A stretch of 64,000 bases of DNA from Eutreptiella sp. 'Long Island Sound 2002' (taxonomy: Eukaryota; Protista; Euglenida): the NCBI GenBank assembly GCA_964036045.1, contig OZ038378.1, positions 53,878,001-53,942,000 on the forward strand. The letters are read 5' to 3'. The notes beneath the pieces are model-generated. The model did not search any database. It saw only the letters and a list, made by a program, of their open reading frames with translations, and was not told where the DNA came from. Every line of letters starts with the position of its first letter. Within the stretch, counting starts at the first letter, position 1. Both the position numbers and the translations under genes were made by a program. Of the stretch, positions 3,406 through 29,820 are shown one piece after another.

Positions 3406-4989
3406 CGGGGCAATGTGAGCCCTGAATCTCAGTCCAGGGAGACAGGCGATGCACGGTCATGGAAGCACATGTGATTGTACATTCAGTGTTTTGCTTCACA
3501 TTGCTCTGTGTATGTGTTTTGCATTCTTTGTGTGTCTGCCTGGAGGGGCATTCTGCTTTGCTTCACACCCCCCGATTTCAGTGGGGTCCCCCATTTAGTG
3601 TGGGGGACCCAATTTTTCCATTGTCTACCGTATACGGTCTACCCCCCTCTCCCCGCTCTCGACTCTTCCCCTCTTTTTTTCAATTGAACGGGGGCCCGCA
3701 GCAGTGTCTCTTCTGCCAAAAACAATTTTTTTTGCAGGTGCGCCTGCTATTTTCCACATGGCATTTTTTTTCTGTCAGTTAAACGACACGTTTTGCAGGG
3801 TTGGTGCCTGGGTGGGGTGCAAGGGGTTCTTCGCCGGGTGTGGGGGGCCCGAGAGGACGCCCAAGCACCAGAGAGTTAAGGATAGCGAGGCTGAGGGGGG
3901 GGTTGTGAAAAGGGGCTCCAAGGGCCACAAGCTTACTTCCTCAGTACAAATGTCTACACTTGTTGGTTGAACAAAATTTTTCAACATACTTCAGCATAAT
4001 CACTTATCCGGGGTGCCCTGAATTTTTCTGGTGTCCTATAAGGACAGTCACAGTAATGTTTTTTTTTCCCACTACGGGAGCCACTTTCTTTTTGCCTGTG
4101 CTTGTGCCTGTGCTTAGCTGCTCGGGTTCCCCTGCGAGGGGGGACCCTGTCAGTTAGTTAAAGGTCAACATTTTTTTCTTTTAAGGAACATTGGTTACAG
4201 GGTTACCCTGAACTATTTTTGCATCTTACCCCATTCTGCCCTTTGCTTCGCTTTTAGAGAATGTCGGTGACGGGAACGTTGGTTGATTGCTGGCGGGTGC
4301 ATGATGTTGTTTTTAATGCGTGTGTATGTGTGTATGTGTGGGCATGTGTGGGTGTCTGTATGTTTGCTCTGGGTCCCCCTGCAAGGGGGGACTCATCGGC
4401 TAGGCAGCCATACCCCTTAAACCCCTCCCCTCTGCTCTCGACCCCTTCTCCGACCCTCTGTTAAACAACCAGCACAAACAAAAGTCAGTTAAACACAAGG
4501 GGGCCACTGACAGCACCGCTTTCGGAAATTTTTTTTTTCATTTTTGGAGAACACTTTCTTGCCTGTTAAACGGTGCTGTCTGATGGCGGGGTGCCTGGGC
4601 AGGCAGGCTTGCCTTCACTGCCCTACAGGGGGGGGGGGGGGGGAGGACGCCCGGGCACCCAAGGGGTCAGAGAGAGCAGGGTGGGATGTAAAAATAAAAA
4701 CCTGTAAGTTCCCCTCCACCCTCCCCGCCTGGGCGGTCCACATGGACCAACCCCTCCTGGCTTCGGCTTCCACACATTTTTAAGGATTTCAAGAGGTTAG
4801 GGATGTTGCAGACAATACAATTTTCTGTGATTTGCCTTGGTGCTTTAGTTAGGAATAGCCCCTGCACTGTACCGCACCACACTGCACTACACTCACTGCA
4901 CTGAAACCGAGAACCCCTGAATTTCCTGTTTGTGGTTGCGATTGTGCATTTGTTCCTTGTCAGCATGCCTCGGTGTGCCACCCATGACA

Positions 4990-6038
4990 TCTCCAATGGC
5001 CAGACCTTGGCACTGCTACATCCTCCAATGCAAATTTGCTTTGCGCTGAACGTTCTGACACTGCTAACAGTTCCAACAGTTCTTCTGACGATTCCTGGGA
5101 CACTTCTTCTGATGATTTTTCGGACAGTTCCTCTGACAGTTCTTGTACCAGTTCCTCCAACAGTTCTTCCGACGATTCATCTGACTAGTCTTCTGACAGT
5201 GACCCTAACTATGGTTCTGTGTGCAGTTGCACTACTAAATCGGACAAAGGGTGTGTGGGTCTGACCTAACGTCTCAAGGATTTGCCCATTTGCCTAGGCC
5301 CATTGCATCTCATTGCGGTGTTCTTCCCCTGCCTGCGTACCCTGTCCCTCAATCTTTGTGAAAATTCTGTGGGAGAGAGTGTGGCACATGCGCTTGCAGC
5401 GCTGAAAGATGCCGCCTCACTGCATACCCTCTACCTCGATCTTTGTGCAAATATCGTGGGAGGCAGTGGGGCACAGGCGCTTGCAGCGCTGAAGGATGCC
5501 GCCTCACTGCATACCCTGTCCCTCGACCTTTGTGGAAATTCTGTTGGAGACAGCGGGGCACAGGCGCTTGCAGCGCTGAAGGATGCCCCCTCACTGCATA
5601 TTCTGTCCCTCGATCTTGGGCAGAATTCTCTGGGAGAGAGAGGGGCACAGGCGCTTGCAGCGCTGAAGGATGCCCCCTCACTGCATACCCTGTCCCTCGA
5701 TCTTGGTGATAATTTTGTCGGAGACAGTGGGGCACAGATACTTGCAGCGCTGAAGGATGCCGCCTCACTGCATACCCTGTCCCTCAATCTGAGGTCCAAT
5801 TCCGTGGGAGGCAGTGGGGCACAGGCGCTTGCAGCGCTGAAGGATGCCCCCTCACTGCATACCTTGTCCCTCAGTCTTAGGCAGAATTCCGTGGGAGAGA
5901 GTGGGGCACAGGCGCTTGCAGCGCTGAAGGATGCCCCCTCACTGAATACCCTGTCCCTCGCTCTTAGTGGGAATTCCATGGGAGGCAGTGGGGCACAGGC
6001 GCTTGCAGCGCTGAAGGATGCCCCCTCCCTGAATACCC
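4990..6038 (+). pseudogene. Ribonuclease-inhibitor-like leucine-rich repeat protein (28-aa/84-bp repeats), disrupted
   Basis: About 8.5 repeats of LHTLSLDLxxNSVGxSGAQALAALKDAPS in 5330-6038. The same frame extends upstream through a Ser/Asp-rich tract with in-frame stops TAG 5186-5188 and TAA 5267-5269. The last repeat is cut off by the satellite near 6040. Confidence 0.8.
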
Positions 6039-6057
6039 GGAGTGTCCGCGCGCGCCG

Positions 6058-9000
6058 CCGTGAATTATATCACCCCTCCGTGAATTATTTACCCCCCTCC
6101 GTGAATTATTTGACCCCTCCGTGAATTATTTACGCCCCTCCGTGAATTTTTCTACCCCTCCGTGAATTATTTACCCCCCCCCCGTGAATTATTTACCCCC
6201 CTCCGTGAATTATTTGACCCCTCCGTGAATTATTTACCCCCCTCCGTGAATTATTTTACCCCTCCGTGAGTTATTTAACCCCCTCCGTGAATTATTTTAC
6301 CCCTCTGTGAATTATTTCACCCCTCCGTGAATTGTTTACCCCCCTCCGTGAATTTTTTGACACCTCTGTGAATTATTTCACCCCTCCGTGAATTGTTTAC
6401 CCCCCTCCGTGAATTATTTGACCCCTCTGTGAATTATTTACCCACCTCCGTGAATTATTTGACCCCTCTGTGAATTGTTTACCCCCCTCCGTGAATAATT
6501 TTTCCCCTCCGTGAAGTGTTTACCCCCCTCCGTGAATTATTTTACCCCTCTGTGAATTATTTCACCCCTCCGTGAATTGTTTACCCCCCTCCGTGAATTA
6601 TTTGACCCCTCTGTGAATTATTTACCCCCCTCCGTGAATTATTTTACCCCTCCGTGAATTGTTTACCCCCCTCCGCGAATTGTTTACCCCCCTCCGTGAA
6701 TTTTTTGACCCCTCTGTGAATTATTTACCCCCCTCCGTGAATTATTTGACCCTTCTGTGAATTGTTTACCCCCCTCCGTGAATTATTTTACCCCTCCGTG
6801 AAGTGTTTACCCCCCTCCGTGAATTATTTACCCCCCTCCGTGAATTATTTGACCCCTCTGTGAATTATTTACCCCCCTCCGTGAATTATTTTACCCCTCC
6901 GTGAATTGTTTACCCCCCTCCGCGAATTGTTTACCCCCCTCTGTGAATTATTTGACCCCTCTGTGAATTATTTACCCCCCTCCGTGAATTATTTGACCCT
7001 TCTGTGAATTGCTTACCCCCCTCCGTGAATTATTTTACCCCTCCGTGAAGTGTTTACCCCCCTCCGTGAATTATTTACCCCCCTCCGTGAATTATTTTAC
7101 CCCTCCGTGAATTATTTACCCCCCTCCGTGAATTATTTTACCCCTCCGTGAATTATTTACCCCCCTCCGTGAATTATTTTACCCCTCCGTGAATTATTTA
7201 CCCCCCTCCGTGAATTATTTGACCCCTCCGTGAATTGTTTACCCCCCTCCGTGAATTATTTCACCCCTCCGTGAATTATTTTACCCCTCTGTGAATTGTT
7301 TACCCCCTCCGTGAATTATTTACCCCCCTCCGTGAATTATTTTACCCCTCCATGAATTATTTATGCCCCTCCGTGAATTATTTTACCCCTCCGTGAATTG
7401 TTTACCCCCCCCGTGAATTATTTTACCCCTCCGTGAATTGTTTACCCCCCTCTGTGAATTATTTGACCCCTCCGTGAATTATTTACCCCCCTCTGTGAAT
7501 TATTTGACCCCTTTGTGAATTGTTTACCCCCCTCCGTGAATTATTTTACCCCACCCCGAATTATTTACCCCCCTCCGTGAATTATTTTACCCCTCCGTGA
7601 ATTATTTACCCCCCTCCGTGAATTATTTTACCCCTCCGTGAATTATTTACCCCCCTCCGTGAATTTTTTTTACCCCTCCGTGAATTGTTTACCCCCCTCC
7701 GTGAATTATTTGACCCCTCCGTGAATTATTTACCCCCCTCCGTGAATTATTTTACCTCTCCGTGAATTGTTCCCCCCCCTCCGTGAATTATTTTACCTAT
7801 CCGTGAATTATTTTACCTCTCCGTCACGGAGGGGGGTAAACAATTCACGGAGGGGTAAAATAATTCACGGAGGGGGGTAAATAATTCACGGAGGGGTAAA
7901 ATAATTCACGGAGGGGGGTAAATAATTCACGGAGGGGTAAAAAAATTCACGGAGGGGGGTAAACAATTCACGGAGGGGTAAAATAATTCACGGAGGGGGG
8001 TAAAAAATTCACAGAGGGGTAAAATAATTCACGGAGGGGGGTAAACAATTCACAGAGGGGTGAAATAATCCACGGAGGGGGGTAAATAATTCACGGAGGG
8101 GTGAAATAATTCACGGAGGGGGGTAAACAATTCACGGAGGGGTGAAATAATTCACGGAGGGGGGTAAATAATTCACGGAGGGGTAAATAATTCACGGAGG
8201 GGGGTAAACAATTCACAGAGGGGTCAAATAATTCACGGAGGGGGGTAAACAATTCACNNNNNNNNNNNNNNNNNNNNNNNNNNNNNNNNNNNNNNNNNNN
8301 NNNNNNNNNNNNNNNNNNNNNNNNNNNNNNNNNNNNNNNNNNNNNNNNNNNNNNNNNNNNNNNNNNNNNNNNNNNNNNNNNNNNNNNNNNNNNNNNNNNN
8401 NNNNNNNNNNNNNNNNNNNNNNNNNNNNNNNNNNNNNNNNNNNNNNNNNNNNNNNNNAATTCCAGGTAATTCACGGAGGGGGGTAAACAATTCACGGAGG
8501 GGTGAAAAAATTCACGGAGGGGGGTAAATAATTCACGGAGGGGTAAAATAATTCACAGGAGGGGGGTAAATAATTCACGGAGGGGTCAAATAATTCACGG
8601 AGGGGGGTAAATAATTCACGGAGGGGTAAAATAATTCACGGAGGGGGGTAAATAATTCACGGAGGGGTAAAATAATTCACGAGGGGGGTAAACAATTCAC
8701 GGAGGGGTAAAATAATTCACAGAGGGGGGTAAATAATTCACGGAGGGGTCAAATAATTCACGGAGGGGGGTAAATAATTCACGGAGGGGTAAAATAATTC
8801 ACGGAGGGGGGTAAATAATTCACGGAGGGGTAAAATAATTCACGGAGGGGGGTAAATAATTCACAGAGGGGTAAAATAATTCACGGAGGGGGGTAAATAA
8901 TTCACGGAGGGGTAAAATAATTCACGGAGGGGTAAAATAATTCACGGAGGGGGGTAAATAATTCACGGAGGGGTCAAATAATTCACGGAGGGGGGTAAAC

Positions 9001-12000
9001 AATTCACGGAGGGGTAAAATAATTCACGGAGGGGGGTAAATAATTCACGGAGGGGTAAAATAATTCACGGAGGGGGGTAAACAATTCACGGAGGGGTAAA
9101 ATAATTCACGGAGGGGGGTAAATAATTCACGGAGGGGTAAAATAATTCACGGAGGGGGGTAAATAATTCACGGAGGGGTAAAAAAATTCACGGAGGGGGG
9201 TAAACAATTCACGGAGGGGTAAAATAATTCACGGAGGGGGGTAAACAATTCACAGAGGGGTGAAATAATTCCACGGAGGGGGGTAAATAATTCACGGAGG
9301 GGTGAAATAATTCACGGAGGGGGGTAAACAATTCACGGAGGGGTGAAATAATTCACGGAGGGGGGTAAATAATTCACGGAGGGGTAAATAATTCACGGAG
9401 GGGGGTAAACAATTCACAGAGGGGTCAAATAATTCACGGAGGGGGGTAAACAATTCACGGAGGGGTCAAATAATTCACGGAGGGGGGTAAACAATTCACG
9501 GAGGGGTAAATATTTCACCCCTCCGTGAATTGTTTACCCCCCACCGTGAATTTTTTTACCCCTCTGTGAATTGTTTACCCCCCTCCGTGAATTATTTTAT
9601 GCCTCTGTGAATTGTTTACCCCCCTCCGTGAATTATTTTACTCCTCCGTGAATTATTTACCCCCCTCCGTGAATTATTCTACCCCTCCGTGAATTATTTA
9701 CCCCCCTCCGGGAATTATTTTACCCCTCCGTGAATTATTTACCCCCCTCCGTGAATTATTTGACCCCTCCGTGAATTGTTTACCCCCCTCCGTGAATTAT
9801 TTTACCCCTCCGTGAATTATTTACCCCCCTCCTTGAATTATTTTACCCCTCTGTGAATTATTTACCCCCCTCCGTGAATCATTTGACCCCTCCGTGAATT
9901 GTTTAGCCCCTCCGTGAATTATTTGACCCCTCGGTGAATTGTTTACCCCCCTCCGTGAATCCTTTGACCCCTCCGTGAATTATTTACCCCCCTCCGTGAA
10001 TTATTTGACCCCTATGTGAATTGTTTACCCCCCTCCGTGAATTATTTTACCCCTCCATGAATTGTTTACCCCCCTCCGTGAATTTTTTTTACCCCTCCGT
10101 GAATTTTTTACCCCCCTCCGTGAATTATTTTACCCCTCTGTGAATTATTTACCCCCCTCCGTGAATTATTTTACCCCTCTTGGAATTGTTTACCCCCCTC
10201 CGTGAATTATTTTACCCCTCCGTGAATTGTTTACCCCCCTCCGTGAATTATTTGACCCCTCGGTGAATTATTTACCCCCCTCCGTGAATTATTTGACCCC
10301 TCTGTGAATTGTTTACCCCCCTCCGTGAATTATTTTACCCCTCCGTGAATTGTTTACCCCCCTCCGTGAATTTTTTTTACCCCTCCGTGAGTTATTTACC
10401 CCCCTCCGTGAATTATTTACCCCCCTCCGTGAATTATTTACCCCCCTCCGTGAATTATTTGACCCCTATGTGAATTGTTTACCCCCCTCCGTGAATTATT
10501 TTACCCCTCCATGAATTGTTTACCCCCCTCCGTGAATTTTTTTTACCCACCCGTGAATTATTTACCCCCCTCCGTGAATTATTTTACCCCTCTGTGAATT
10601 ATTTACCCCCCTCCGTGAATTATTTGACCCCTCTGTGAATTATTTACCCCCCTCCGTGAATTATTTCACCCCTCCGTGAATTGTTTACTCCCCTCCGTGA
10701 ATTATATGACCCCTCTGTGAATTGTTTACCCCCCTCCGTGAATTATTTACCCCTCCGTGAATTATTTACCCCCCTCCGTGAATTATTTCACCCCTCCGTG
10801 AATTCTTTCACCCCTCCGTGAATTGTTTACCCCCCTCTGTGAATCATTTCACCCCTCCGTGAACTATTTACCCCCCTCCGTGAATTATTTCACCCCTCCG
10901 TGAATTGTTTACCCCCCTCCGTGAATTATTTTGCCCCTCTGTGAATTGTTTACCCCCCTCCGTGAATTTTTTACCCCTCCGTGAATTATTTACCCCCCTC
11001 CGTGAATTATTTTACCCCTCTGTGAATTATTTACCCCCCTCCGTGAATTATTTTACCCCTCCGTGAATTGTTTACCCCCCTGCGTGAATTATTTGACCCC
11101 TCCGTGAATTGTTTACCCCCCCTCCGTGAATTATTTGGGCCCTTCGTGAATTTTTTACCCCCCTCCGTGGATTATTTTACCCCTCTGTGAAATGTTTACC
11201 CCCCTCCGTGAATTATTTTACCCCTCCGTGAATTATTTACCCCCCTCCGTGAATTATTTTACCCCTCTGTGCATTGTTTACCCCCCTCCGTCAATTATTT
11301 TACCCCTCCGTGAATTATTTACCCCCCACCGTGAATTATTTTACCCCTCCGTGAATTATTTACCCCTCCGTGAATTATTTACCCCCCTCCGTGAATTATT
11401 TTACCCCTCTGTGAATTATTTACCCCCCTCCGTGAATTATTTTACCCCTCCGTGAATTGTTTACCCCCATGCGTGAATTATTTGACCCCTCCGTGAATTG
11501 TTTACCCCCCCTCCGTGAATTATTTTACCCCTCCGTGAATTGTTTACCCCCCTCCGTGGATTATTTTACCCCTCTGTGAAATGTTTACCCCCCTCCGTGA
11601 ATTATTTTACCCCTCCGTGAATTATTTACCCCCCTCCGTGAATTATTTTACCCCTCTGTGCATTGTTTACCCCCCTCCGTCAATTATTTTACCCCTCCGT
11701 GAATTATTTACCCCCCACCGTGAATTTTTTTACCCCTCCGTGAATTATTTACCCCTCCGTGAATTGTTTACCCCCCTCCGTGAATTATTTCACCCCTCCG
11801 TGAATTGTTTACCCCCCTCCGTGGATTATTTTACCCCTCTGTGAATTGTTTACCCCCCTCCGTGAATTGTTTTACCCCTCTGTGAATTATTTACCCCCCT
11901 CCGTGAATTATTTCACCCCTCCGTGAATTATTTACCCCCCTCCGTGAATTGTTTCACCCCTCCGTGAATTGTTTACCCCCCTCCGTGAATTATTTGACCC

Positions 12001-12165
12001 CTCTGTGAATTGTTTACCCCCCTCCGTGAATTATTTACCCCTCCGTGAATTATTTACCCCCCTCCGTGAATCCTTGCACCCCTCCGTGAATTATTTGACC
12101 CCCCTCCGTGAATTATTTGACCCCTCCGTGAATTATTTGACCCCTCCGTGAATTATTTGACCCCT
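6058..12165. repeat. 21/22-bp satellite (CCGTGAATTATTTACCCCCCT alternating with CCGTGAATTATTTTACCCCT), ~6.1 kb, with an internal inverted block at 7825-9510
   Basis: Directly visible. Orientation flips at CTCCGT|CACGGAG (7824/7825) and GGGGTAAA|TATTTCACCCC (~9510). Confidence 0.95.
8258..8457. other. Assembly gap (200 N)
   Basis: Run of N inside the satellite. Confidence 0.99.
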
Positions 12166-12171
12166 GTGTGT

Positions 12172-12843
12172 GTGTCAATTATTTTGGGGGTCTAGACCCC
12201 CCTAGGAATTGACGCATAGGGTCGCGTCAATTATTTTGGGGGTCCAGGCCCCCATAGGAATTGATGCACAGGGTCGCGTCAATTATTTTGGGGGTCTAGA
12301 CCCCTATAGGAATTGGCGCATAGGGTCGCGTCAATTATTTTGGGGGTCTAGACCCCCCTAGGAATTGACGCATAGGGTCGCGTCAATTATTTTGGGGGTC
12401 TAGACCCCCCTAGGAATTGACGCATTGGGTCGCGTCAATTATTTTGGGGGTCTAGACCCCCATACGAATTGATGCATAGGGTCGCCCCAATTATTTTTGG
12501 GGTCTAGACCCCCGTAGGAATTGACGCCTAGGGCCGCGTCAATTATTTTGGGGGTCTAGACCCCCATAGAAATTGGCGCATAGGGTCGCGTCAATTATTT
12601 TGGGGGTCTAGACCCCCCTTAGGAATTGACGCATAGGGTCGCGTCAATTATTTTGGGGGTCCAGACCCCCGTAGGAATTGGCGCATAGGGTCGCGTCAAT
12701 TATTTTGGGGGTCTGGACCCCCCTTAGGAATTGACACATAAGGTCGCGTCAATTATTTTGGGGGTCTAGACCCCCATAGGAATTGACGCATAGGGTCGCG
12801 TCAATTATTTTGGGGGTCCAGACCCCCATAGGAACTGGCGCAT
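12172..12843. repeat. 52-bp tandem repeat, ~13 copies, each unit an imperfect palindrome
   Basis: GTCAATT recurs at 12174, 12226, 12278 and onward. Unit is GCGTCAATT-ATTTT-GGGGGTCTAGACCCCC-CTAGG-AATTGACGC-ATAGGGTC. Confidence 0.95.
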
Positions 12844-12845
12844 AG

Positions 12846-13035
12846 CAGGGGGGTGCACCACCTCAGTGGAATATCTATCCAGAGGGGGGGTGTACACCAC
12901 CTCAGTGGAATATTTATCCACAGGGGGGGGGGGGTACACCACTTCAGTGGAATATTTATCTAGAGGGGGAGGTACACCACCTCAATGGAATATTAATCCA
13001 CAGGGGGGGGGGGTACACCTCGGTGGAATATTTTT
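12846..13035. repeat. ~33-38-bp tandem repeat, about 5 copies (GGGGGTACACCACCTCAGTGGAATATTTATCCA)
   Basis: Directly visible; the G-run length varies between units. Confidence 0.85.
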
Positions 13036-14150
13036 CCCAGCCTCCCATTTTCCCCAATGCCCCATTTTCCACCTTTTTTTCCTCTTTTGGGGGGGGGGGT
13101 GTTCCCCTGTGTTGCATGGACTCCCATTCTTCCCAACTTTCAATTTTCATGATGGTTTTTTTTGTGGTGGGTGGCTGTGTTGGGGGAGGGGGAGTGCCAG
13201 ACTTTTTCTTGTACCTTTCTGACAGGAAGGAAGGAAGGGAGGGGGCGGGTACCACACTTTTATCAGAATTTTGCTGAGATGTGTTCTGTTTTATGTCCTT
13301 GACACGAGATGCCAAATCAGACTTCAGACTTCAGACTTTATACGCATAGCTGTAACACGCATCAAGCACTTTCACCGTTGACAGTGAAACTATTTCCCAC
13401 ACGGTGGTGTCCAGGGATAAACAGGGAAAGCTGGTACAGTGAATTTTATTTTTTGGAAGAGGCCTGTAAAAAAAGGAACCGGAAATATCACCGGACCGTC
13501 GTCTGGTCCAATGGTTATAATCCTCGTCTCGTGATTCTGGGGGGATGGGTTCGGTTCCCACTAGATCCCCCATCCTAGCCACCCTGTGGCATACCACATC
13601 AGTACACGGTCACCCACTAGGCATGATAAGTGCCCCGTTGCAGAGGGGGTACACTACTAGTACTACCAAACCGGTAGTTTTTAGACATGTTTTGCAGTAT
13701 ATGGTTGACTATGTAGTGAGACACCAGATTTCTAGCCCTGGTTGTAGGAAAAGTACCCCACGAGGACTTGGAGGCATCAATAGAGTTGTACCACACCCGT
13801 TATCTCCTTGTGTGTATGTCCTTGTGTGCATGGGGGAACAGTGGGGTGCCCGGTGAGGATCTCTTTGACTTTATGCCCCCCCCCCCCCCATGTACTTGCA
13901 TTCACTCTATTGCCCACCTGCTTTCAGGTGGGAGGCATCGGATCACAAGAACTTTCACTGTCAACAGTGAAACCATTTACAGCCACTGCCTGTTGGGTCC
14001 ACATGTTGTAATTAATCTCTGCATAAGTTGTGTTATTGTACCTGCTGACACCTTCTCTCCGCTAACTTTCATTGTCAACTATGAAACCACTGGTTGTCGT
14101 CTGCTTGTTCTGTATGTAGGTCATCTGCCTGTACTGCCTCAGAGGGCATT

Positions 14151-16387
14151 ATGACTGACAACATTGCCTCCCCATTCAGTCTACGAGACTTTTGCTCGGG
14201 GTTGTATGACCTCCTGGACCGGGCTGACATGTACCAAGACGGGGACTCGCTGGTGGAGTGCGCTATGGGGGTAGGACCAGCTTTGACTCTTGTGGAGATG
14301 GCCCTGGAGTTTCGTATGAATCCTCGAACAAGACGAGGTATTGCCGACCTGAAGCAGGACTGGCCGAGTCGTGGGTCTACGCAATGGTTACTGCGCTTTG
14401 TGCCTGCTGCATTCAAGCTCTTCCGCTGCATGCTGGTGCTGGCAAAGCCGATGAAAGTGGCAGAAACGGTACCCAATACAGGGGTTGTGACACCATTGAC
14501 CAAGGAACAGCGGCTTGAGTTGCGGGGAAATGGGCTTATACTGCATCGAGAATTACCATTGGCCAACCGGGTTGCCCTTGCACAAGAGCGAATCCGCGAA
14601 GAAATGACACAAGGATGCTAAGTGACATGGGCAGAGCAGTTTTGCAAGAGCCGGTACAGCAAAAATCCACATGGACCACGGGACATCTCCTTGTCATGCA
14701 CTGCTGTTGCCGTCCTCACAGGCTTGTTGGTGAGATTGTCGTACGCTGGTCGGCCTTCCGCAGAGAAATTGACAACACGGGTCAAAGATGTGGCACTGCA
14801 TATGCGGGACTCGGTGAGTGAGTTTTTGACTGTTGTGCAGGACCTGGCATCAGATCGACTGCCCCTTCGTCTTCTTTGCTGTCCGTTGGATATTCGCCGG
14901 GGCAACCCAAGGACGTCACCACGGCAGCCATATGGATTATGGGAAATCAACGTCACCAAGACGGCGGGATTGGGGGACGTGTTGTTCCGGTCATTGCAAG
15001 ACAATCTTGGGAACCGCAACCCAGTGAAGGTATTACTTTGTGACATGAACATATGGTGGAGGGTTGCAAAGGTTGTGTACAATAGGGAGCATGCTGCTTC
15101 TCCAGTACGGGGTGCGCTCCGTGACATATGCCCTGTCTATGGGATTTGGCAGGCTTACAAGGTGTGTGTCATTGCTTTATACAAGGCTTTTTCACCTTTT
15201 TTTATCTATCTGGAGTACGATTGTATCTTAATGGATCCAACTGCCACACGGGTGTACCAGTACCCCGCTCTGATTGTTTTGGAGAGGCTCATTCTTCGTG
15301 CTACCTTGCGTATCCTGCACTGCAGTCTCAATTCGACCGTAGCTTCCGGAGTTTCACTGTTGACAGTGACGCTCCCCTCTCGAAGGAGCGCTGGGAGGCG
15401 CTGCGGCAATTATTGAAGGCTTATGTTCCCGTTGTCTTGCAGTTAGGTATAATGTTGCCCGACTACTCCTGGAGACATCGTGCCTCTGGCACTGGTGTTG
15501 CAGCACGCAAGGTTTTAGAATGCAGCGTGTTTCTGCTGCGGAAAATCAAGCTGACACATAGTGACGGCAACTATAAAAACACTATCCGCATTGCTCTCCT
15601 TCTTTGGAGTTAGTTCCATGATGCATTGCCAGGTACTGCGCATGTTGAAGAGAAAGGCGAATCTATGCTGTCTCGTCTTGTGAAAGCATCAAAGCATGCT
15701 CTCAGTGCTACCACACTGGAGCAATATGAGTCCTTGTTTTTAACCATCAGAAAGGCTCGACAAGGAACCACGTTCCAGCAGAAGGCCCATATAGCATTGG
15801 GCTGCGTCCAAACGGTGCAGGGTTGGTTGCAAAACTTGTTGCAATGTTTGACCTCAGGCACGGCCCCCTTTGTAGATATCAGAACACGTGAGATGGAGGA
15901 TAATCCTAAGCCCGCCTGCGTAACAGGTACCAACATTTGGCCAAACAGTTTCCAATTTCCACCAGCCCTCATGGACTCAACAAGCCTGGTTGAGTCGGAG
16001 TATATCCTACTGCACCAAAGCCTTCACACTCTTTTTTACCTCTCCGGCAAAGCGTGTGACAGGGCAGACCGCTGGGCTGTAGCTGATCAGATGATCCAGC
16101 ACCAGCAATCGCCCCGGGATTGTGACGATAGTTCCTTTTTTGATGACTATGCAGGAACAGCTGCACACCTACGTGGAATGTTACCACATGATGCTATGGC
16201 GTTGGGACTGCCCATTTGGGAAAAAGTACCTAGAAAACGCAAAAGAGCAGGTGATGTTGGTGACCAAAACGGGTCTCAGGTAGACTCCGATGATGATGTG
16301 GACCTTGATGCCGTGGCATTGGCTTACAATGAGTTGTGCTATGTTGATTCTGAAAGAGATGATGACGACTGTATCTTAGTTGGGTAG
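14151..16387 (+). pseudogene. Putative RNase H-fold DDE-type transposase (~740 aa), disrupted
   Basis: ORFs 14094-14621 and 14622-15416 share one frame (stop TAA 14619-14621). After a frameshift near 15300, ORFs 15128-15613 and 15626-16387 share a frame (stop TAG 15611-15613). Ordered motifs TWAEQF, LLCDMNIWWRV, VYGIWQAYK and HVEEKGESMLSRL resemble a D..D..GxWH..E layout. Acidic tail with a basic RKRKR patch. Confidence 0.5.
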
Positions 16388-17673
16388 GGCTGGCAATGCT
16401 CCAGAACACGGATGTATATGGTGGCTAATGGACCTGTCGAACTGCCAATGGTTGCGGTTCCACACCGTGTCCACATACCCCGTGTTTGTTGATGCCTGTG
16501 TGTCCAGTGTAGTGTCCAATGCAATTGCCATCAGGTTGGAGGACAGTGACTAACTTTCACTGTCAACTGTGGAACACCAGGTGAAGGAGGTTGGAATGTA
16601 TCACACGACGATTATGCGATGGTGAGTTCATAATGCCACAAATGGCATGCAAATCACGGATCACTTTCACTGTTGACAGTGGAACCCTTGGGAAAGGGAT
16701 CCAAAATGGGGGACGCTTCAGACAATGTTCGGCATCCAGTGCAACGTTCTGCGCGTGTGGCATATGATGCCTGTGGTTTCCCTCCTCCCTGCCTGTTGTG
16801 GGTCTGTGGCCAGCGCGATATCACTCATGCGAATGAATTTGCGCCGTCATTGGTAAGAATTTGGAGTGCATTTGAAGAAAAGCGCTTACTGCCTGTGTGG
16901 TTTTGAGGCTTTGAAAGGGCTTCGATCACGTTACTAATCATTGGTGAAACAAACAACCAAGCAAGGGTGAGACAATGGAACATTTGGTCTTCACACAGAA
17001 CAAGGTTAACCGAGTATCTGGCATGATAGTGACAAACGAAAACTAGTGCCCTATTGATAACTAAAGACACATACTACTTTGAACCAAATGGCCTGCAACA
17101 CACTTTCACTGTTGACAGGGAAACACCGTTCCAAAGGTGCCTCCAACACGCAATTTCAGGGTGTTTTGGGCACTTTTTGTGCTACTTGTGGCTCCTCCTT
17201 GTTCTCTGCAGGATTCCATAAAATGGAGGACCCCCCTGTGGAGCCTGAGCCCCAAGACCAGGCGGAATCTGGTGAAGTGCCTACGGATGAGAAACAGGAA
17301 GACGTCGAACCGGAGCGCTGCTCTGGCGGTGAAGCACATGCTGATGGTGACGAAAGTGGTTTGGGTCAGGAGGAGGAGGAGAGTTCTGAGTCTGAAGAGG
17401 AGGAAGAGGAGGAAGTTGAGCCTGAGCAGGATGACGAGACCAAAATACAACCGCGACCGTGCATCCTGGAGGGTGGAGACGCAGAGGCTCAGCAGGTCAA
17501 AAAGTACATCATCGCAAGGAAGTACGTTCATGTCAGCAAGTTGATCTGGGATGACGAGCTGAAGTACGGTCAGTCACAACGTGTACAGCGCCCCCGCCTC
17601 GCAAGACTCCGTCGCAGTGTCGCCCACCGAGGGCTGATCGAGGAGGTTCGCGGTTATCTACTGGACAGAGGAG

Positions 17674-17806
17674 GTCTATGCCCCAATCAGTGCAGGCTTT
17701 TGTATCAATCGTTTCACTGTTGACAGTGAAAGTCTCCTGTCCTGTACCGATTGTTTCACTGTTGACAGTGAAAGTCTCCTGTCCTGTGGCCCTTGTCTGC
17801 CTGCAG
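17674..17806 (+). other. GT-AG intron 1 of the ParB-like gene, containing two palindromes in a 42-bp tandem duplication
   Basis: Donor GAG|GTCTAT, pyrimidine tract and CTGCAG| acceptor. The phase-1 join restores the frame. Confidence 0.8.
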
Positions 17807-18184
17807 GAGACATCCAGCTGGTGCTCGGCGGACCACACATGTGCGCCATTGTGAAAGAGCTGTGGCTCGCACTGACATCACCGATTCAGCAGGGGGGTCA
17901 AGCTGTAGCTGAAAGCGATGTACCCCGAGAAATGCGATTCATCTATGGGGTTATACTTCGTGAAGACACAGCACTAGAGATCTGCCGCAGGCCTGCACCA
18001 AAAGGCCCAGAGGGAATTCTGTGAGACTACTTTCTCTGAGGTGGCTGCTGCATTTCTACAACGCTGTGCTGAAATCGTGAAGAGGACCGGCCAGAAGTAC
18101 GCAACGCCCGATGCTGGTGAGATCTGCGAAGTGGTAAGAGATCTTGGGGTGCCATACAAGGAGTATATGGACATTGACACAACG

Positions 18185-18282
18185 GTATGTGACAAGTGAA
18201 TTTGCACTTCGAGGGCCGTGTTTCCACTGAGTTTCACTGTCAACAGTAAAACTATCTCTGTCTTACTCCTCGGCGTACCAAG
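18185..18282 (+). other. GT-AG intron 2 of the ParB-like gene, containing one palindrome
   Basis: Donor ACG|GTATGT, acceptor CCAAG|GCT. The phase-0 join runs into the frame of ORF 18322-18633. Confidence 0.75.
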
Positions 18283-18580
18283 GCTGTCGATGAGTGGAGG
18301 GGTCTGGCGCAGTTTTGTGGGATGATACTGGATGTTGGCGACAAGTTCAGCCAGGCTTTTGCGGCGTTTGACGAGAAGAAGTGTCTCAGTCATGCTGCCT
18401 TCAAGGAAAGTGCTGGGCTACCGCGGGCGTACTGTTTGGAGTTTGTCCACTGGGTGGCGAGTCCAGGGTCCACAATCAACACCAATACAGTCTCCCAGAA
18501 ACTCAGATACCTGAAGTACCTCTATCACGTCCGGAGTCATGTGTTCGGCCAAGGCAACCCAGAGATCCACGAAAGCCAAT

Positions 18581-18690
18581 GTATGCCTGTTGCCATCTAC
18601 TCACATTTGTTGTTGCATGATTCTACTGGCTGACGTCGCGCTGTTTCACTGTCAACAGTGAAACTCATTTCGTGTCTCCTTGCAATGCAG
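18581..18690 (+). other. Probable GT-AG intron 3, containing one palindrome
   Basis: Donor AAT|GTATGC, acceptor TGCAG|GAA. The phase links ORF 18322 to ORF 18672, but the junction codon reads TGA. Confidence 0.5.
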
Positions 18691-21348
18691 GAACTGAGGC
18701 CACCATGCCGATGCTCTGTAACGCAGTCAAGTGGGATGAGAGATATTGGGCACTGGGTGCAACAGGCCGCGAGGCAGCGAGGTACCGGCTGGGAACTGCT
18801 CAACCGACATGGCAAAATTTGCGGAAGTCAAAATTCTGGCAAGACCCTTGGCGCGCTGACACACGCAGGTCACTGCGGCAAGCATTGTGTGCTGAGGAGA
18901 CTGAACCTGGTAGCGGGGGGGCTGCATCTGAGCTGGATGGAGTGTGCACTGCTGCCTTTGCTGGAACCCAGAGGACGATCCACTTCACTGGAGACATGGG
19001 CAGGCATCTGTCTGCCAAGGCCCACCTCCTGTTTATTAAAGTCCCAGAAGGAAGTGAGACATCACTTCTGCCGCCGGGATTCGGAAAGAAGCTTGCTGCT
19101 AAAGGGGTCCCAGCAATCCTGTACGGTCCGAATGTGAAGTACACCCTGGCACGTCTGTTCGAGGAGGCTACACCACTGCGGGAATGGCAGTACACCTGTA
19201 TCCGGCTGTACACCCCCCGGGAAGACTTGCTATTCACAAGCAAAAAGCCCAAGCAGTTGACGACACTAACCCTGTGCGCTATCCTGGTGACACCCGGAAG
19301 TATTGCACAGCACCCGCCATACGCTGCTACGAATTTGGATTGGAGGTCATCGTGGTTCCGCTGGCTTCTAGGATTGTTGGCTGGAAGACTTGTGGTACCA
19401 AATGCACCAAAGCTGCCGGCAATTGTGGTGATGTTCAGCGCCCTCCACAAACCGACACAAGTGTATGGGATGACAGCAGCACTGATTGCCTGCTTGCTTG
19501 GCTGGTCGTGGCGTCTCTCGTTACCGGATGCCTGGGGAGTGGGGACCGACTCAGTGAAGCAAAACTTGGTGCGGGCTGTACAGCAATGTGCACGGGAACA
19601 AGCAGCAAACTTGCAAGCCGAAGGAGAGCCGTGGCAGCCCGGAACGCCGGTGAATGCGCAGCAGCTGCGCCTTCTTGATAAGAACCTCCGATCTGAAGTC
19701 AAAGCGGCAGAGAAAGTGGATCACAAGAGGCGGAAGTTGGTTCTGAAGCAACGGGAAAAGGATGAACTCGTGGCGGCAAAAATGTCACTATAAGGAGAAT
19801 GGTACAAAGGTTGTTGACCACAGGCAAGGAAGCCAGCATCGGAGGCTCCTCGACAGCCCATTCGGTGCCCCCACCACTCCAGAAAACCCGACTGTCCGAG
19901 GAGGTTTCACTGGTGACAGTGAAAGTGTCGGTCCTGAAGCTGCCTCATCTAGTGCTGTCGATCTTGGGGTTCATGTGCCCCCAACTGACCTAGAGCCTGC
20001 TTTCCATGCTGTCAGTGCTGATGCAAAGCCAGCTCCAAAGCGAGCTCCTGCGAACAAGAAGGCAAAGTCTAAGACCACTGCCAAGACAAGTGTAAAGGGG
20101 CAGACTGGGCAGACCACCCTCACTCAGATGGACCTGGAGGCTAGGGTTGATGTACAGAGTATTGACAAGGCCCAGCAGCAGGCAATTGCAGCACAGATCG
20201 AGGCTGCCAACAATGCGGGATCTGGCGGACGAGGAGCTCCAGGGCTGAAACGCAAACCCAAAGCACAGGCCGTGACCATGCCCAGTGTAGTTCAGCTTGC
20301 GCAGGCTTCGCGGAGGACCCGCAGTGCAAAGCAGTAGGCTGAATGGGAGGACCTGTCAGTTGTGCTTTTTTGAGAACTCCTTCTGTTTGTACTATTGTTG
20401 TCCTGTAAACAGTTCCTGGTCTGCTAGGTCATCACATTGCACTGTTCACTGCTGCACTGAGTTTCACTGTAAACAGTGAAACACACTGCCACCATGGCCT
20501 CTGTGGCCGAAATGCCTGAAGCCATCATTCATTTTTCTGCTCTGTGATAATATACCGTTTCATTGGGTAGTGCACTGCCCTCATTTCAGCTTTTGTTTTC
20601 AACAGACAACAAAACAGGGTTATAAGTCCTAAATTTTGCCCTGCAGCTGCTGTCTTGGGCTATTGTTGTTGCATCACCCGCACCGTGTATCTCCTGGCTG
20701 CATGCAGCTGAAAGCAGGCACAAAGTTTTTTTTTTCTACCTGCTATTTTTTTATTATTATTTTTCTATCTGCTTTTTCCGAGTTGCATCTCCAAGTGCAT
20801 TATAAAGATGTGTTTCACTGTTAACAGTGAAAGTGTCTCCCATGCTGGTGTGATTCGCCAATTCCAGAGTGTGGCATCAAAAATACAGTCTGACAACACA
20901 TGCAGCGACACCGTGTGTACACGTACCGTGCTTGTGTTTTGTGTTGCATATTTACATACACGTCTTTGTCACAGGGGAAGTTGTTCGAGTATTACTGCAG
21001 TCCACCGCCGTAGACTGCATGGAAGGGGGGGGGGGGTCTGGGGATACGGTCTGCCACACCTCAATGCTTCCACAACGGTAAGAGTTTCACTGTTGACAGT
21101 GAAACAATATGAAATATGAGCCCCACACTGGGGTTTTGGGAAATTCAATTTTTCTGCGAGTTTCACTGTTGGCCACGAGGGCTAACAGTGAAACCTTTTG
21201 CCCGTTTTTGGGGGCCCCGACGACCCGGTATGTCAGGTTCGTAACCCCAAGCTACTGCCCTGTCCTAAATCCCTGTCCTACGACACCTGCCTGTTGCAGT
21301 CCCTGTCATGCTCTCTTGTCCGTACGTGCTCTCTGAATTCAAGCCTCA

Positions 21349-22251: not shown

Positions 22252-22440
22252 AGACACGGGTCATGACAGGGGTCTGTCTCAAGACAGGTTACCAAGACAG
22301 GTACTAAGACAGGGGGGCTGTCTGGCGACAAGTTACCAAGACAGGTAGTAAGACAGGGAGGTTTCCGGCGACAACCCCCGTGTCTTAGTACCTATCTTGG
22401 TAACCCGTCTTAAGACAGACCCCTATCATGACCTCTGTCT
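22252..22440. repeat. ~190-bp fold-back: ~70-bp inverted arms built from AAGACAG motifs
   Basis: GGTCATGACAGGGGTCTGTCTCAAGACAGGTTACCAAGACAGGTACTAAGAC (from 22259) pairs with 22382-22433 with 4 mismatches in 52 bp. Pairing extends to about 22252-22322 versus 22370-22440. Confidence 0.85.
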
Positions 22441-25505: not shown

Positions 25506-28299
25506 TGATTTTACGAAATGGACACGGCGTGTGTGCACATGGCGGCACCGGTGTCCACAGGGTCCCCTTGGCATAGGGAACATGTTTTAATGCCTAAAAG
25601 TCATAGGATGTGAGGCGATATGGTGGAGGAATACGTCCCTTTGGGGGGTTGTCCGCCTCGTCCTGTTTGGCTGCACCTCATGGCGGCGTGACCTACGCCT
25701 TAGCAACACGATCCGCTGCGCGAGGATCCCGGCAGGGTGCAATGCGGGTGGTGGCTGCCGCTGGCCGTGCAAAGGCAGCGTCCCCGCCGATACAACCCAA
25801 GGCTGCTGCCCTCTAGGCCCTGCTGCCTTCGAATACGGCGGTGCAGCCGCACCGCTTTTACCAGGGTGAGTCCCGGGACACGATCGAGGAATGTGGCATC
25901 CCCGAAATCACGCCGGGGCGACACCCGGCAGAGTGGAAACAATCCTCCCAGGAGGGAGGCCTACGATGGGTGGCCTTGGTGGGCTGCACAATCCACGAGG
26001 CCCACCTTGCGAGTGCGGCCGCCATTGCGGCGCATGACGGCGTGCATCGGGTCAGGGCGCTAGTGCACGTTCAGGGTAGCAGCAAAGCGGCCCCCGCAAA
26101 GGCAAACCTGCTACAGGCTCTCCGCAGCTCGAAAACTAGCCCTGCGATGCCGGCACATACCTGCAGGGCGTGGTCCGGACCAAGCGCCAGCCCTGGGAGA
26201 CAACCGACCCGGGGGTGGTGGACCCCTCTTCGCCAGAGCACATATTGCAACTCGTTTGGGAGCGTCTCCCGGACAACGACCTGTGGGAAGCGGCCGAGCT
26301 CCCGGATGTGGACTCCGCAACGCTCGACACCTTGCCGTCCACAGTTAGGGTCGTCTGCGTCCGGGACTCAGCGGTTCTGTTGGATGGAGACGTGCGCTGC
26401 CTCCATGTGGGTGCTTTCGGCAAAGACCACGCATGGCGTCACCGCAAACCGCGGATGGGGGCAGCCCTGCCTCAGCCCCCGCCAATGCAAGCGGCGGTCC
26501 GGGGGTCGAGGGTCGAGTTCTCAGCATATGTCCCGACAGAGGTGGGGCCGCTTGTTATGCGCGCTAGCGGCAAGGCCCGGGGCGTCCACTTCCGGCCGTG
26601 GATCGTCGCCGGCACATTGTGCCAGTCTATACGCCCACAGCCCACGAGGGCGCCCTGCGGCGAGGTGATGGCCCTGCTTCCCTCTCGATGGAGGGAACCA
26701 GCTCGGGTGGTGGCAGGGGGGCCCACTCTGGTGTGGGGTGGTGGCGGGGTGGCGTGGGACTCAGCCGCCGCGGCGTTGCCGCTGTCCCCTGCGCTTGGCG
26801 CAGCCAGGGCCGTGTCAAGGGAATCCCCCCCCCCCCCCCCCCCGGGACGGGCGGTGGCCACGAACCAGGCCAGCAGGGCGCGCCGACTAACCGGGGACGG
26901 CTAGGAAGAAATGTGGTGCGGCAAGATGCCACGCCTGCTAGCCCCCCCCCCCCCTCCTGCCCAATGCCCTGGCCGCCTTGCGACGTGCCGCCGGCGTCCT
27001 TTGCCCATGGCACGGAGACCGCGAGGACGGAGCCAGGGGTGAGGGCGCGGGCACAACGCCCCCCCCCCCCCCACTTCTATAGAGCCGGCGGCGGCACCGT
27101 GGCCTCGCCTTGCTGCGGTGGTGGTACGGTCAAGCCGCCCAGGTGTACCCCGCCCCCCACCAACGCCGGGGGCCAGCACCACCTGTGCCCTTGCCCCCCT
27201 TGAGGAGCTGAGCCCTAGTGTCCTGCGCCTCCAAGATCTCCTTGCCGCGGCCTACAATCGGTGGTGGCATACCCACCACCAGCGCGTGCGCGGCCCTGTC
27301 TGGCTGTCTGCCGTCCAAGGCCCCGATGGCCCCGAGTTCGGGACCAAGGGGGCCATCGTTGACCGGGCCGTGCAGTGGAGGTACCCCCGGGTCCTCTTCG
27401 CGCGCGCCCCCCGGCTGGACGCCCGGAGCGCCGACCTCCCCTACACATGGCCTTGGTACCTGGCGCCACTGTGGGAGGACGAGACAGGTGCGCCGATGTG
27501 GCGGCTGACCCGGCACGGCTGCGTGGTGCGTTGCCCCCCCCCCCCCCCCCCCCCGAGTGCTGGCACCTCCGCCCACACCGCCGCTGCCTCACCCTCTTCG
27601 AGGGAGAGACGGCCGCCGGCCGGACCCACACCGTGGCAGTGGACTAGTGGGGCCGGGTGTGGGATAACGACCCCGCCCGCAAGCCCCCCCACCCCGACCC
27701 CGCGCCCTCGGCTACCTGGCGGGAGGTGGCCGCTGAGGTGCACGCCCTGATCCCCCTACTCACGGACACCTGGTGGGCCGCCATGCTGGAGCAGGGGGAG
27801 GTCTGCGCCACAGCCCGTTGGCTAGATATCCTCCACCGCATGGACCCCGGCCCCCACCGGGACCTCATGCACGAGGTCAGACCCGGAGCCCGGGCCCCTT
27901 GGCGAGGGGTGGGAACACGGCCGACCCCCCCCCCCCCCGCGCCGCGTCTACCTACCCCCCCCCCCCCCCCCGCCGCTTGCCGATGGCGGACCGCCGCGTC
28001 GTTCCACGCCGCCTCCCCCGCCTCCCGGCGCGCGCGCCCACCTTGGGCCAGTGACCTCCGCCGACCGCCGGACCTCGGTGATCGGGCCCGTCAGGCCGAG
28101 GAGCGATGGCTGACTTGCAGGCATGCGTTGTTCGTCCCCCCTCTGACCCCTCCCTTCACGCACCCTGACCAACGGCAGTTGAGTTCGTGTGTGGGCCGGG
28201 TGCTTCCCCCCATCCCCCCCCCCCCCCGGGCTAGGGCGACAGTGGCTCCACTCCTACCCCCGCCTCAGTGGGCTGCCGATGGCACCTCCCCCCCCCGTC

Positions 28300-28341
28300 T
28301 TGCTGCTGCGCTGCGGGGACGTGGAACCCCACCCGGGGCTA
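28300..28341 (+). other. 2A-like (StopGo-like) peptide motif LLLRCGDVEPHPGL immediately before the APE domain
   Basis: Translated in frame with the endonuclease start. It resembles GD(V/I)ExNPGP with N to H and the final P to L. Confidence 0.65.
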
Positions 28342-28759
28342 TTGCGTGTGGCGCATTCCAACGTCACGTCCCTGTGCCTGCACTAGCACACGGTCGCCAG
28401 TGGCGGGTGGACGCGGTGCTGCTCTCCGAGATCCGCCTCACCGCGGTCGCACAGCAAGTGATGCACGGATGGCAGGCTTTCTGGGGGGCTCCCCTAGAAT
28501 CCGGGGGGGGGGGGGGGGGGCGTGGGGCATGTGGGGTGTGCCGGCTGCGGGGGGGGGTATTAGTACACCAGGGCATTCCCACAAGACAAGTCGTCCCCAA
28601 GGGGGTCCTTAAGGGACAAGATTTTTTTTTAAGGACCCCCCTTAAGCATCGCCCCTAGAGGCCTTTTTGCCCCGGCCCAACGTGGGCCATGTCTATCCCC
28701 CCTTTTTGGGGACCACCGAGAAAGCAGGAGTTACGTAGCAATTCCGCCCTCTTTTGGGC

Positions 28760-29318
28760 ACCACTTCTACTTCTGCCCCCCGCTCTGAAGCGGTGGGGAT
28801 CCCTCAGGCGGCACGGCTTACGTAGCCACCTTGCCCACAAGTGGGCCACTTCTGATTTTGCCCCCCGCTCTGAAGCGGAGGGGAGCCCTGAGACGGCAGG
28901 TGTTACGTAGCCACCTTGCGGACAAGTGGGCCACTTTTGAATCTGCCCCCCGCTCTGAAGCAAAGGGGAACCCCGAGGCGGCAAGGCTTTTGTAGCCACC
29001 TTGCCCACAAGTGGGCCACTTCTGATTTTGCCCCCCGCTCCGAAGCGGAGGGGATCCCCGAGACGGCAGGGGTTACGTAGCCTCCTTGTGGACAAGTGGG
29101 CCACTTCTGATTCTGCCCCCCGCTCTGAAGCGGAGGGGGACCCTGAGGCGGCAAGGGTTACGTAGCCACCTTGCCCACAAGTGGGCCACTTCTGATTTTG
29201 CCCCCCGCCCTGAAGCGGTGGGGATCTCCGACACGGCAGGGCTGCCGTAGCCACCTTGCCCACAAGTGGGCCACTTCTGATTTTGTCCCCCGAAGCGGAT
29301 GGGATCCCCGAGGCGGCA
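28760..29318 (+). repeat. 85-bp tandem repeat, about 6.5 copies
   Basis: GTAGCC anchors at 28822, 28907, 28992, 29077, 29162 and 29247. One further copy lies in the opposite orientation at ~29826-29925. Confidence 0.92.
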
Positions 29319-29319
29319 C

Positions 29320-29820
29320 ACGAACACGAGCTTGCCTCAACCCAATCCTCCACTGTAGCACTAACATTGCACTCAATTCCTTTGAATCGTGTTTGCACGT
29401 CTTCAATCAAACTGCGAAGAAACTTCATCCGGCTACCCTTGCTGAGGCTACCTCCTATGTCAACACCCAACGATTCCTCTCACCCACCCGGAATGACATG
29501 ACGCATGGTGTGCAACAGCTGTTGGCACATCGCGTTCGTCAAAGGCTGCACGGCGGTGACCCGTGCCCCCTTGGTCGCTTGAACGTTCTTGCTTGTGGCA
29601 CAAGCCACAGCAAAAACATCGCAAAAAAAGGCCGCCGTGAACTTGAAGAGGGGCTGCGAAAGTGCCTCGAACAAGCCCTGGGCCTTCTCCCTACACCCCA
29701 GGTTAGCCTCATGATCAATGTACTCGGGCAAGTGTTCCAGAACAGCAGGCAGGTTCTCTAGCACAATATCAAGCTCGTGGCACATCGCTTCCACCCAATG
29801 CACACCAGTGCGGCGGGAGA
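29320..29820 (-). pseudogene. hAT-like transposase, central segment
   Basis: HWVEAMCHELDIVLENLPAVLEHL..KAQGLFEALSQPLFKFTAAFFCDVF..SKNVQ and, after a stop, FLRSLIEDVQTRF. This matches the (T)RW..L..D..L..S..Q..L..RF pattern of hAT transposases. Confidence 0.6.

Follow-up and report, generated by a model that had tools for sequence, protein, structure and literature searches.

Why would a transposon carry one short palindrome again and again along its length, in its introns and even in its codons? This question is raised by a 64,000-nucleotide stretch of DNA from Eutreptiella sp. 'Long Island Sound 2002' (contig OZ038378.1, positions 53,878,001 to 53,942,000; below, the window), where two genes are surrounded by copies of one 22-bp dyad. 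An earlier reading made from the letters only (the sequence-only reading) had described here a eukaryotic DNA transposon with a DDE-like transposase gene, a gene for a ParB/Srx-like protein and 16 parS-like palindromes. We found a decayed 8.4-kb two-gene transposon with 20 dyads. We lean, by a small measure, towards the view that these dyads are predicted cis sites for a dimeric binder encoded by the element, the gene 2 product being the likelier candidate.

Anatomy of the element and its copies

The full element consists of positions 1846-2362 and 13361-21251 (8,408 bp in total) and is split in the window by a nested insertion. In the alignment with two other copies, L001 and L003, the sequence 1846-2362 was continuous with that starting at 13361. 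Because both copies cross this junction without a break, we regard 1846-2362 as the left arm of the same element. The limits given previously were 13339-21251; the right one was exact, while the left one falls inside the terminal repeat of the nested insertion. It had also been claimed that the palindrome occurs elsewhere only in a short derivative of the element. The only other place in the window is indeed 1900-2311, but this is the left arm. The parts of the element are listed below, with the strand where one applies.

1841-1845: left target-site duplication CTAGT, which matches CTACT at 4 of 5 positions
1846-1869, plus strand: left terminal inverted repeat CTTGGGGGTACGAACCTGATATCC, aligned to the right ends of five copies after reverse complementation
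1846-2362, plus strand: left arm, placed by its contiguity in L001 and L003
2363-13352: nested insertion, foreign to the element (10,990 bp), absent from L001 and L003
13361-21251, plus strand: main body, placed by alignment to other copies
21228-21251, minus strand: right terminal inverted repeat, from the end alignment of copies
21252-21256: right target-site duplication CTACT, from the end alignment of copies

Further copies were located using the last-exon open reading frame (ORF) of gene 2, and six loci were fetched from the ENA assembly ERZ25074135. The copies lie at unrelated loci with different flanks (more than 25 protein clusters, on many contigs of this assembly). The body of the window copy was 93-95% identical to L001 and L003, 89-91% to L002 and L005, and 77% to L004. 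Flank alignments gave terminal inverted repeats of approximately 24 bp (CTTGGGGGTACGAACCTGACAT..) at both ends in several copies; the termini begin with CTTGGGGG (CTTRGG style). Perfect 5-bp target duplications were observed for L001 (CCACT/CCACT) and L003 (ACAGT/ACAGT). The carrier contigs are of Mb scale, and the neighbouring genes include reverse transcriptase/RNase H and protein kinase genes. A search for relics of the dinoflagellate spliced leader found none. Given the terminal inverted repeats, the 5-bp duplications, the many copies, the Mb-scale contigs with such neighbours and the GT-AG introns of gene 2, the element is a Class II cut-and-paste DNA transposon of a eukaryote, of an unclassified family. 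In this the sequence-only reading was right, as it was about two co-oriented genes with stops and frameshifts; the window copy is a decayed one.

Four target duplications (CCACT, ACAGT, CTAGT and TCACT, the last from a gene-less element described below) fit the pattern N-Y-A-S-T and are similar to the dyad's inner arm. With n = 4, this hints at a target preference.

Dyads in the window

The dyad is GTTTCACTG-N4-CAGTGAAAC (22 bp), with two 9-bp arms and a non-conserved 4-bp centre. We found 16 dyads within 13369-21194 and 4 within 1900-2311, which gives 20 in the element. The number 16 had been reported before and is made up of 14 full dyads at 13369-21105 (up to 3 mismatches allowed), a degenerate copy (14066) and a copy with an expanded centre (21160-21194). 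There was no dyad elsewhere in the window and 0 in shuffled sequence, and none is expected by chance. The centre was seen both ways round (TTGA, TCAA) and was sometimes divergent; therefore the conserved unit is the two 9-bp arms. Both orientations of the centre are what would be expected of a symmetric dimer that does not read it. The sites are listed without strand.

1900-1911: subterminal half-dyad GTTTCACTGTTG
2020-2041: dyad
2191-2212: dyad, perfect on the minus strand
2290-2311: dyad
13369-13390: dyad
13952-13973: dyad
14066-14087: degenerate dyad CTTTCATTGTCAACTATGAAAC (family D7)
15351-15372: dyad in the gene 1 coding sequence, read FTVDSE
16554-16575: dyad, intergenic
16664-16685: dyad, intergenic
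17103-17124: dyad, upstream of gene 2
17711-17732: dyad, gene 2 intron 1
17753-17774: dyad, gene 2 intron 1, within a 42-bp duplication
18231-18252: dyad, gene 2 intron 2
18643-18664: dyad, gene 2 intron 3; carries a nested insertion in L001
19904-19925: dyad in the gene 2 coding sequence, read FTVDSE
20461-20482: dyad, 3' non-coding, kept in the 77%-identity subfamily L004
20812-20833: dyad, 3' non-coding
21084-21105: dyad, perfect
21160-21194: subterminal dyad with a 17-nt centre

Dyads were densest at the ends, with five in the first 526 bp from the left and four in the last 800 bp on the right. Away from the ends they were spaced by 0.1-1.3 kb, never by more than approximately 1.3 kb. They were present in all three introns of gene 2, one or two in each, and in all intergenic stretches. 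Since both coding dyads are read as FTVDSE, and the one in gene 1 falls in a linker that is not conserved among relatives, we consider that constraint on the DNA overrides coding at these places.

In six copies we counted 69 dyads within 38.8 kb of element DNA and 0 in 132 kb of flanks. The dyad is private to this transposon family, and no exact match was found in the metagenome, bacterial and archaeal genome, and viral collections. When the window was compared with L004 over the 3' non-coding region, 90 of 101 dyad columns were identical, against 549 of 831 other columns (Fisher p = 6.5e-7). The dyads are conserved islands between subfamilies, and there is selection on the sites.

Two trivial origins of the repetition were rejected. 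Spread of the palindrome in the manner of introners or miniature inverted-repeat transposable elements does not agree with its absence outside the family. Excision footprints do not agree with the recurrence of the same 22-bp sequence at conserved positions.

Dyads of related lineages

We also examined related lineages, namely contigs that encode proteins 22-47% identical to the gene 1 or gene 2 product. Every related lineage fetched had a different dyad of approximately 20-26 bp with similar symmetry (five related lineages including the gene-less element below, six with the window family). The dyad was CAGTAGTCG-N4-CGACTACTG in L013 (3 copies), GAATTACCTT-GG/CC-AAGGTAATTC in L012 (4-5 copies), ACGTGATGG-GCGC-CCATCACGT in L010 and L011 (7 and 4 copies, respectively) and ATTTCTTCTCG-N4-CGAGGTAAAAT in L008 (4 copies). 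When these dyads were sought in the other lineages, we observed no cross-occurrence.

Within L001 there is a gene-less 3.9-kb element (L001:6022-9935) with the terminal inverted repeat CTTAGGCGTCACAAG.., termini of the CTTAGG... style and a 5-bp duplication TCACT. Its insertion point falls precisely within an L001 dyad. The structure is foldback-like, with 30 copies of a dyad of its own, GCTGGCCGAA-AT-TTCGGCCAGC (GCTGGCCGAAATTTCGGCCAGC). A derivative without genes thus retains 30 dyads, so it is the dyads that a non-autonomous element preserves.

A distant gene 2 relative at L010:1588-3810 has an internal deletion which fuses its first intron to its last. As both of these introns carry the L010 dyad, the deletion may have been caused by recombination between dyads. 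L011 retains exon-3-like sequence upstream.

Gene 2

Gene 2 was rebuilt from a five-copy consensus, with exons predicted from ORFs and GT-AG splice sites. The predicted gene has four exons, encodes approximately 930 amino acids and is co-oriented with gene 1.

17223-17673, plus strand: exon 1, acidic tract and first half of a putative DNA-binding region (ORF, GT donor)
17807-18184, plus strand: exon 2; frameshift near 17990-18020 here, frame restored by the consensus
18283-18580, plus strand: exon 3, from the five-copy consensus
18691-20337, plus strand: exon 4, predicted methyltransferase-like fold, coiled coil and basic tail; intact as P0002 (537 amino acids)

From its N-terminus, which is acidic, the product continues into a putative DNA-binding region and a conserved C-terminal domain, and it finishes with a coiled coil and a basic tail. 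The position of the intron after exon 1 is common to the distant relative L010. In the window copy there are two frameshifts in gene 2 overall, the second near 19780 in exon 4. In addition, the last base of exon 3 (18580) is changed from C to T (CG to TG), and the spliced junction codon CGA becomes TGA. An exhaustive search with P0002 returned distant relatives in other samples at 22-27% identity.

An AlphaFold2 model of the last exon (11-sequence alignment) had an alpha/beta core at residues 76-300, with a predicted local distance difference test score (pLDDT) of 55-81. In the Foldseek search of the PDB, the top 50 matches were all beta-class N6-adenine/N4-cytosine (N6A/N4C) DNA methyltransferases or MT-A70 proteins (best E = 2.4e-5, template modelling (TM) score 0.50). 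The matches include M1.HpyAVI, CcrM, MboIIA, TTHA0409, a type III Mod subunit, rotifer N4CMT and METTL3/14. The top matches in BFVD were N4/N6 methylases, among them a phage protein, A0A6J5MMM5, annotated as ParB/Sulfiredoxin. With moderate confidence, the model points to a beta-class N6A/N4C methyltransferase-like fold in the C-terminal half of gene 2.

Gene 1

Gene 1 is a single-exon gene and a candidate transposase.

14151-16387, plus strand: gene 1, single exon, broken here; an intact 745-amino-acid ORF is present in another copy (P0109)

The window copy has one frameshift near 15296-15368 (tblastn) and in-frame stops at 14619 and 15611. Full-length relatives (P0037, P0082, P0083) were found at 34-47% identity in other samples, including a sediment metagenome, and there were none in JGI metagenomes or IMG/VR. 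Four lineages share the invariant motifs W-x-D, PLDxxR, LxD..WRV, GIWHAYKxCV, DGNYKN and EEKxE. These are compatible with a DDE enzyme, as the sequence-only reading had supposed. On the other hand, the intact relatives and alignments gave no Pfam, NCBIfam or PDB sequence match, and the AlphaFold2 model (10-sequence alignment) had a pLDDT of 38 and was unusable, so that Foldseek informed us on gene 2 only. Pfam returned nothing relevant for all ten ORF pieces of both genes; at thresholds of E <= 1-10 it gave no family at all for P0037, for P0028 or for any piece from the window. Judged from its conserved motifs and context, gene 1 may encode a DDE transposase.

Several known families were considered for gene 1 and rejected. 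There was no profile match to Plavaka/EnSpm, KDZ, MULE, hAT, PIF, piggyBac or another transposase modelled in Pfam. Transib is the classic superfamily with 5-bp target duplications. Pfam, which would include RAG1 models, gave no match, nor did PDB sequences of RAG1/Transib, and termini starting with CTTGGGGG are presumably not Transib-like. Fanzor/TnpB was rejected as there was no Pfam match of any kind and only two cysteines are invariant.

An intact 731-amino-acid relative of gene 1 (L006, L007, P0089-P0092) recurs on contigs of 2.5-2.6 kb in several samples. No dyad was present on these contigs. Their nearly uniform length suggests that they are transcripts, and so that an expressed, active lineage exists elsewhere.

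What would bind the dyads

We infer protein binding of the dyads, the identity of the binder and the effect of binding as follows. A dimeric, sequence-specific protein encoded by the element would recognise the dyads; the more likely binder is the product of gene 2, and dyad and protein would co-evolve. That every lineage carries a dyad of its own fits cognate pairs of protein and site. Because the dyads lie at the ends, in every intron, in intergenic DNA and in coding sequence, at most approximately 1.3 kb apart, the bound protein may cover the whole element. Such element-wide spacing argues for a role beyond end recognition and therefore favours gene 2 over the transposase. By such coverage the element could have its DNA or chromatin marked or modified, or its ends brought together for transposition. 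A bolder version is an unrecognised cut-and-paste superfamily, in which a dimeric binder encoded by the element and fused to an N6A/N4C-methyltransferase-like domain co-evolves with a lineage-specific dyad of approximately 22 bp, repeated every 0.1-1.3 kb in introns and codons too. In this version the element would recognise and mark, or shield, its own DNA, as a eukaryotic analogue, carried by a transposon, of ParB-parS or of self-marking by modification methylases. We consider this version unlikely.

Several results weigh against the gene 2 reading. No search identified a DNA-binding domain in gene 2. The model of its C-terminal part had a mean pLDDT of 50.7 (medium confidence), with modest TM-scores. 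Methyltransferase profiles (N6_N4_Mtase, MT-A70) gave no Pfam match among 11 members at E <= 10, and no methyltransferase was returned by NCBIfam and PDB sequence searches or by PDB profile searches. The hhalign comparison of the C-terminal alignment with E. coli YhdJ gave a probability of 0.07%, which is not significant; in it, motif IV aligns as GPN. The S-adenosylmethionine motif I, FxGxG, was not visible, and the only candidates for motif IV were HPPY/xP[YF] and a conserved ILYGP(N/G). As the catalytic motifs were not recognised in canonical form, the domain may be inactive. Finally, dyads are borne both by the contigs L012 and L013, where the only relative is one of gene 1, and by the contigs L008, L010 and L011, where it is one of gene 2. 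Since dyads accompany either gene alone on these short contigs, binding by the transposase stays a serious rival.

In this rival explanation the gene 1 transposase binds the dyads for end recognition or synapsis, as with the subterminal repeats of CACTA, Mutator and Foldback elements, and gene 2 is an unrelated accessory. We regard it as somewhat unlikely. The dyads are densest beside both ends, and the gene-less element nested in L001 is built of long inverted arms that are full of its own dyads, both of which agree with this explanation. So do the gene 1 relatives of L012 and L013, which have dyads on either side and no visible gene 2 nearby; however, these contigs are only approximately 3 kb, so the absence of gene 2 means little. 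End recognition leaves the intron, intergenic and coding dyads, at spacings up to 1.3 kb, unexplained, and the searches of gene 1 brought up no DNA-binding or catalytic domain.

The sequence-only reading had proposed a ParB/Srx-like domain in gene 2. If gene 2 encoded a true clamp of this type with cytidine triphosphatase (CTPase) activity, it would load at parS-like dyads and slide along the element, or along an intermediate after excision. The junction of exons 1 and 2 lies within the candidate domain, which is split by an intron in every copy; a ParB-like hydrophobic and glycine pattern that we saw there by eye is a lead. We searched with the 116-amino-acid spliced consensus of exons 1 and 2 from five copies. 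No ParBc/Srx match was found in Pfam or NCBIfam at E <= 10, and phmmer and a small-profile search of the PDB returned no ParB, Spo0J, KorB or Srx chain. The hhalign probability against phage P1 ParB was 0.4%, with a shallow query profile. There was a faint, non-significant echo of the TFIIIC winged-helix region (E = 1.4). The would-be box II reads GGQHMCA in the consensus (GGPHMCA in the window) and does not have the arginines of GxxRxxA.

The one piece of positive evidence for the clamp explanation comes from the dyads themselves. The outer 7 nt of the arms (GTTTCAC / GTGAAAC) equal the parS half-sites quoted in the sequence-only reading (rough post-hoc chance approximately 2e-3). Fusions of ParB with N4/N6 methylases are present in phages (A0A6J5MMM5) and algal transposons (PMC12477816). 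However, the half-sites are 8 bp apart and do not abut as in the contiguous 16-bp parS palindrome TGTTTCACGTGAAACA quoted there, none of the dyads of the five other lineages is parS-like, and a sliding clamp needs no site every 0.1-1.3 kb. Membership of gene 2 in ParB/Srx is not supported, and we consider the clamp quite improbable.

RNA hairpins in the transcripts of the element, acting in splicing control, stability or small-RNA production, would account for the one or two dyads in every gene 2 intron and for the L010 dyad in an L010 intron. This is very improbable: many dyads lie beyond plausible transcripts or upstream of genes, including both subterminal regions, the gene-less derivative bears 30, the centres are found either way round, a stem of 9 bp is shorter than is usual in known processing signals, and the Rfam scan of the window gave no family. 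Equally hard to credit are dyads as preferred landing or recombination sites for elements of the same terminal style, as suggested by the insertion inside the L001 dyad (duplication TCACT), by the likeness of the four duplications to the inner arm and by the L010 deletion joining two dyad-bearing introns; there are only four target sites, and lineage-specific dyads and their conservation between subfamilies are left unexplained.

Relation to known systems

The sequence-only reading knew of no described eukaryotic transposon that pairs a ParB-like gene with internal sites. Eukaryotic DNA transposons that combine internal inverted repeats with an accessory protein for binding or modifying DNA have, in fact, been described before. 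In the red alga Bostrychia, the Plavaka gene PAG3 encodes ParB with a 2-oxoglutarate oxygenase and has adjacent inverted-repeat arrays, and PAG2 encodes an N6A methylase with SET (10.1101/2025.02.11.637652). Sola1-1_Ec32 of the brown alga Ectocarpus combines a ParB-like protein with a DNA methyltransferase (PMC12477816), and fusions of ParB and a helix-turn-helix domain with Dam are reported from chlorophytes and chytrids (PMC4738411). It was proposed that accessory proteins of algal transposons bind and modify their own element (10.1101/2025.02.11.637652; PMC12477816; PMC4738411).

Like the algal Plavaka and Sola1 elements, the present one has terminal inverted repeats, an accessory gene beside the transposase, family-specific internal inverted repeats and a predicted DNA-methyltransferase-like domain, and the proposed logic is shared: the element would bind, and perhaps modify, its own DNA. 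In contrast to them, it has no ParB profile match, its methyltransferase motifs are non-canonical and its gene 1 has no Pfam match at all. It is 8.4 kb long and not giant, its target duplication is 5 bp, and its dyads stand singly all along the element, with some in every intron and two in coding sequence, and do not make up a tandem array adjacent to a gene.

En/Spm (CACTA) is a two-protein transposon in which the TnpA protein binds many subterminal 12-bp repeats. TnpA is non-catalytic, the short repeats near the ends are in both orientations, and it also affects the epigenetic state of the element. This resembles the arrangement proposed here; CACTA repeats, however, are subterminal only, the duplication is 3 bp, and both proteins come from one alternatively spliced unit. 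We detected no sequence similarity to En/Spm.

Bacterial ParB-parS is similar in that palindromic sites are proposed for a dimer and parS also contains the half-site GTTTCAC. A putative DNA-binding N-terminus followed by a methylase-like C-terminus also recalls the phage ParB + N4/N6-methylase fusions (PMC4738411; BFVD). Unlike ParB-parS, the element has no CTPase motif that we found, its half-sites are 8 bp apart, and the dyads of other lineages are unrelated. The anti-silencing accessory protein VANC of VANDAL (Mutator) elements binds short family-wide motifs and alters methylation of the family (as cited in 10.1101/2025.02.11.637652). Its motifs are not long dyads and the superfamily is different; no homology was detected.

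What is new here is a candidate transposase family without detectable relatives among known profiles, a 5-bp duplication combined with termini of the CTTRGG type, dyads that are scattered one by one over introns and codons, and at least six lineages each with its own dyad. The transposase candidate has no Pfam, NCBIfam or PDB sequence match and may add a superfamily to transposon classification. Dyads within introns and codons show unusually strong selection at the DNA level in a selfish element. If a protein of the element binds the dyads, the lineages would form a natural experiment in protein-DNA co-evolution, with at least six lineages, one architecture and six sites, and the element would be a compact 8.4-kb model for testing the recent proposal that certain eukaryotic transposons bind themselves and set epigenetic marks on their own DNA. 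For annotating the family in new genomes, dyads together with terminal repeats offer a simple signature.

Surroundings of the element and the nested insertion

The flanks (1690-1845, 21257-21300 and 22252-22440) are rich in GACAG/CTGTC repeats, and an inverted repeat with 71-nt arms lies just downstream; the element probably sits within another repeat. Further away, positions 26000-36000 form a GC-rich block (GC 0.61-0.72, compared with approximately 0.5 for the rest of the window), whose long ORFs had no Pfam match.

The insertion at 2363-13352 is unrelated to the host transposon. It begins with CAGCTATGGGTATAG... (CAGCTATGGG...) and ends with ...CATAGCTG (CAG...CTG), and it is flanked by the 8-bp duplication TAACACGC at 2355-2362 and 13353-13360. 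It is packed with 41-bp and 52-bp satellite arrays and contains an LRR_6 ORF at 5282-6124. The 52-bp satellite unit is a 44-bp palindrome, GCGTCAATT..GGGGGTCTAGACCCCC..AATTGACGC.

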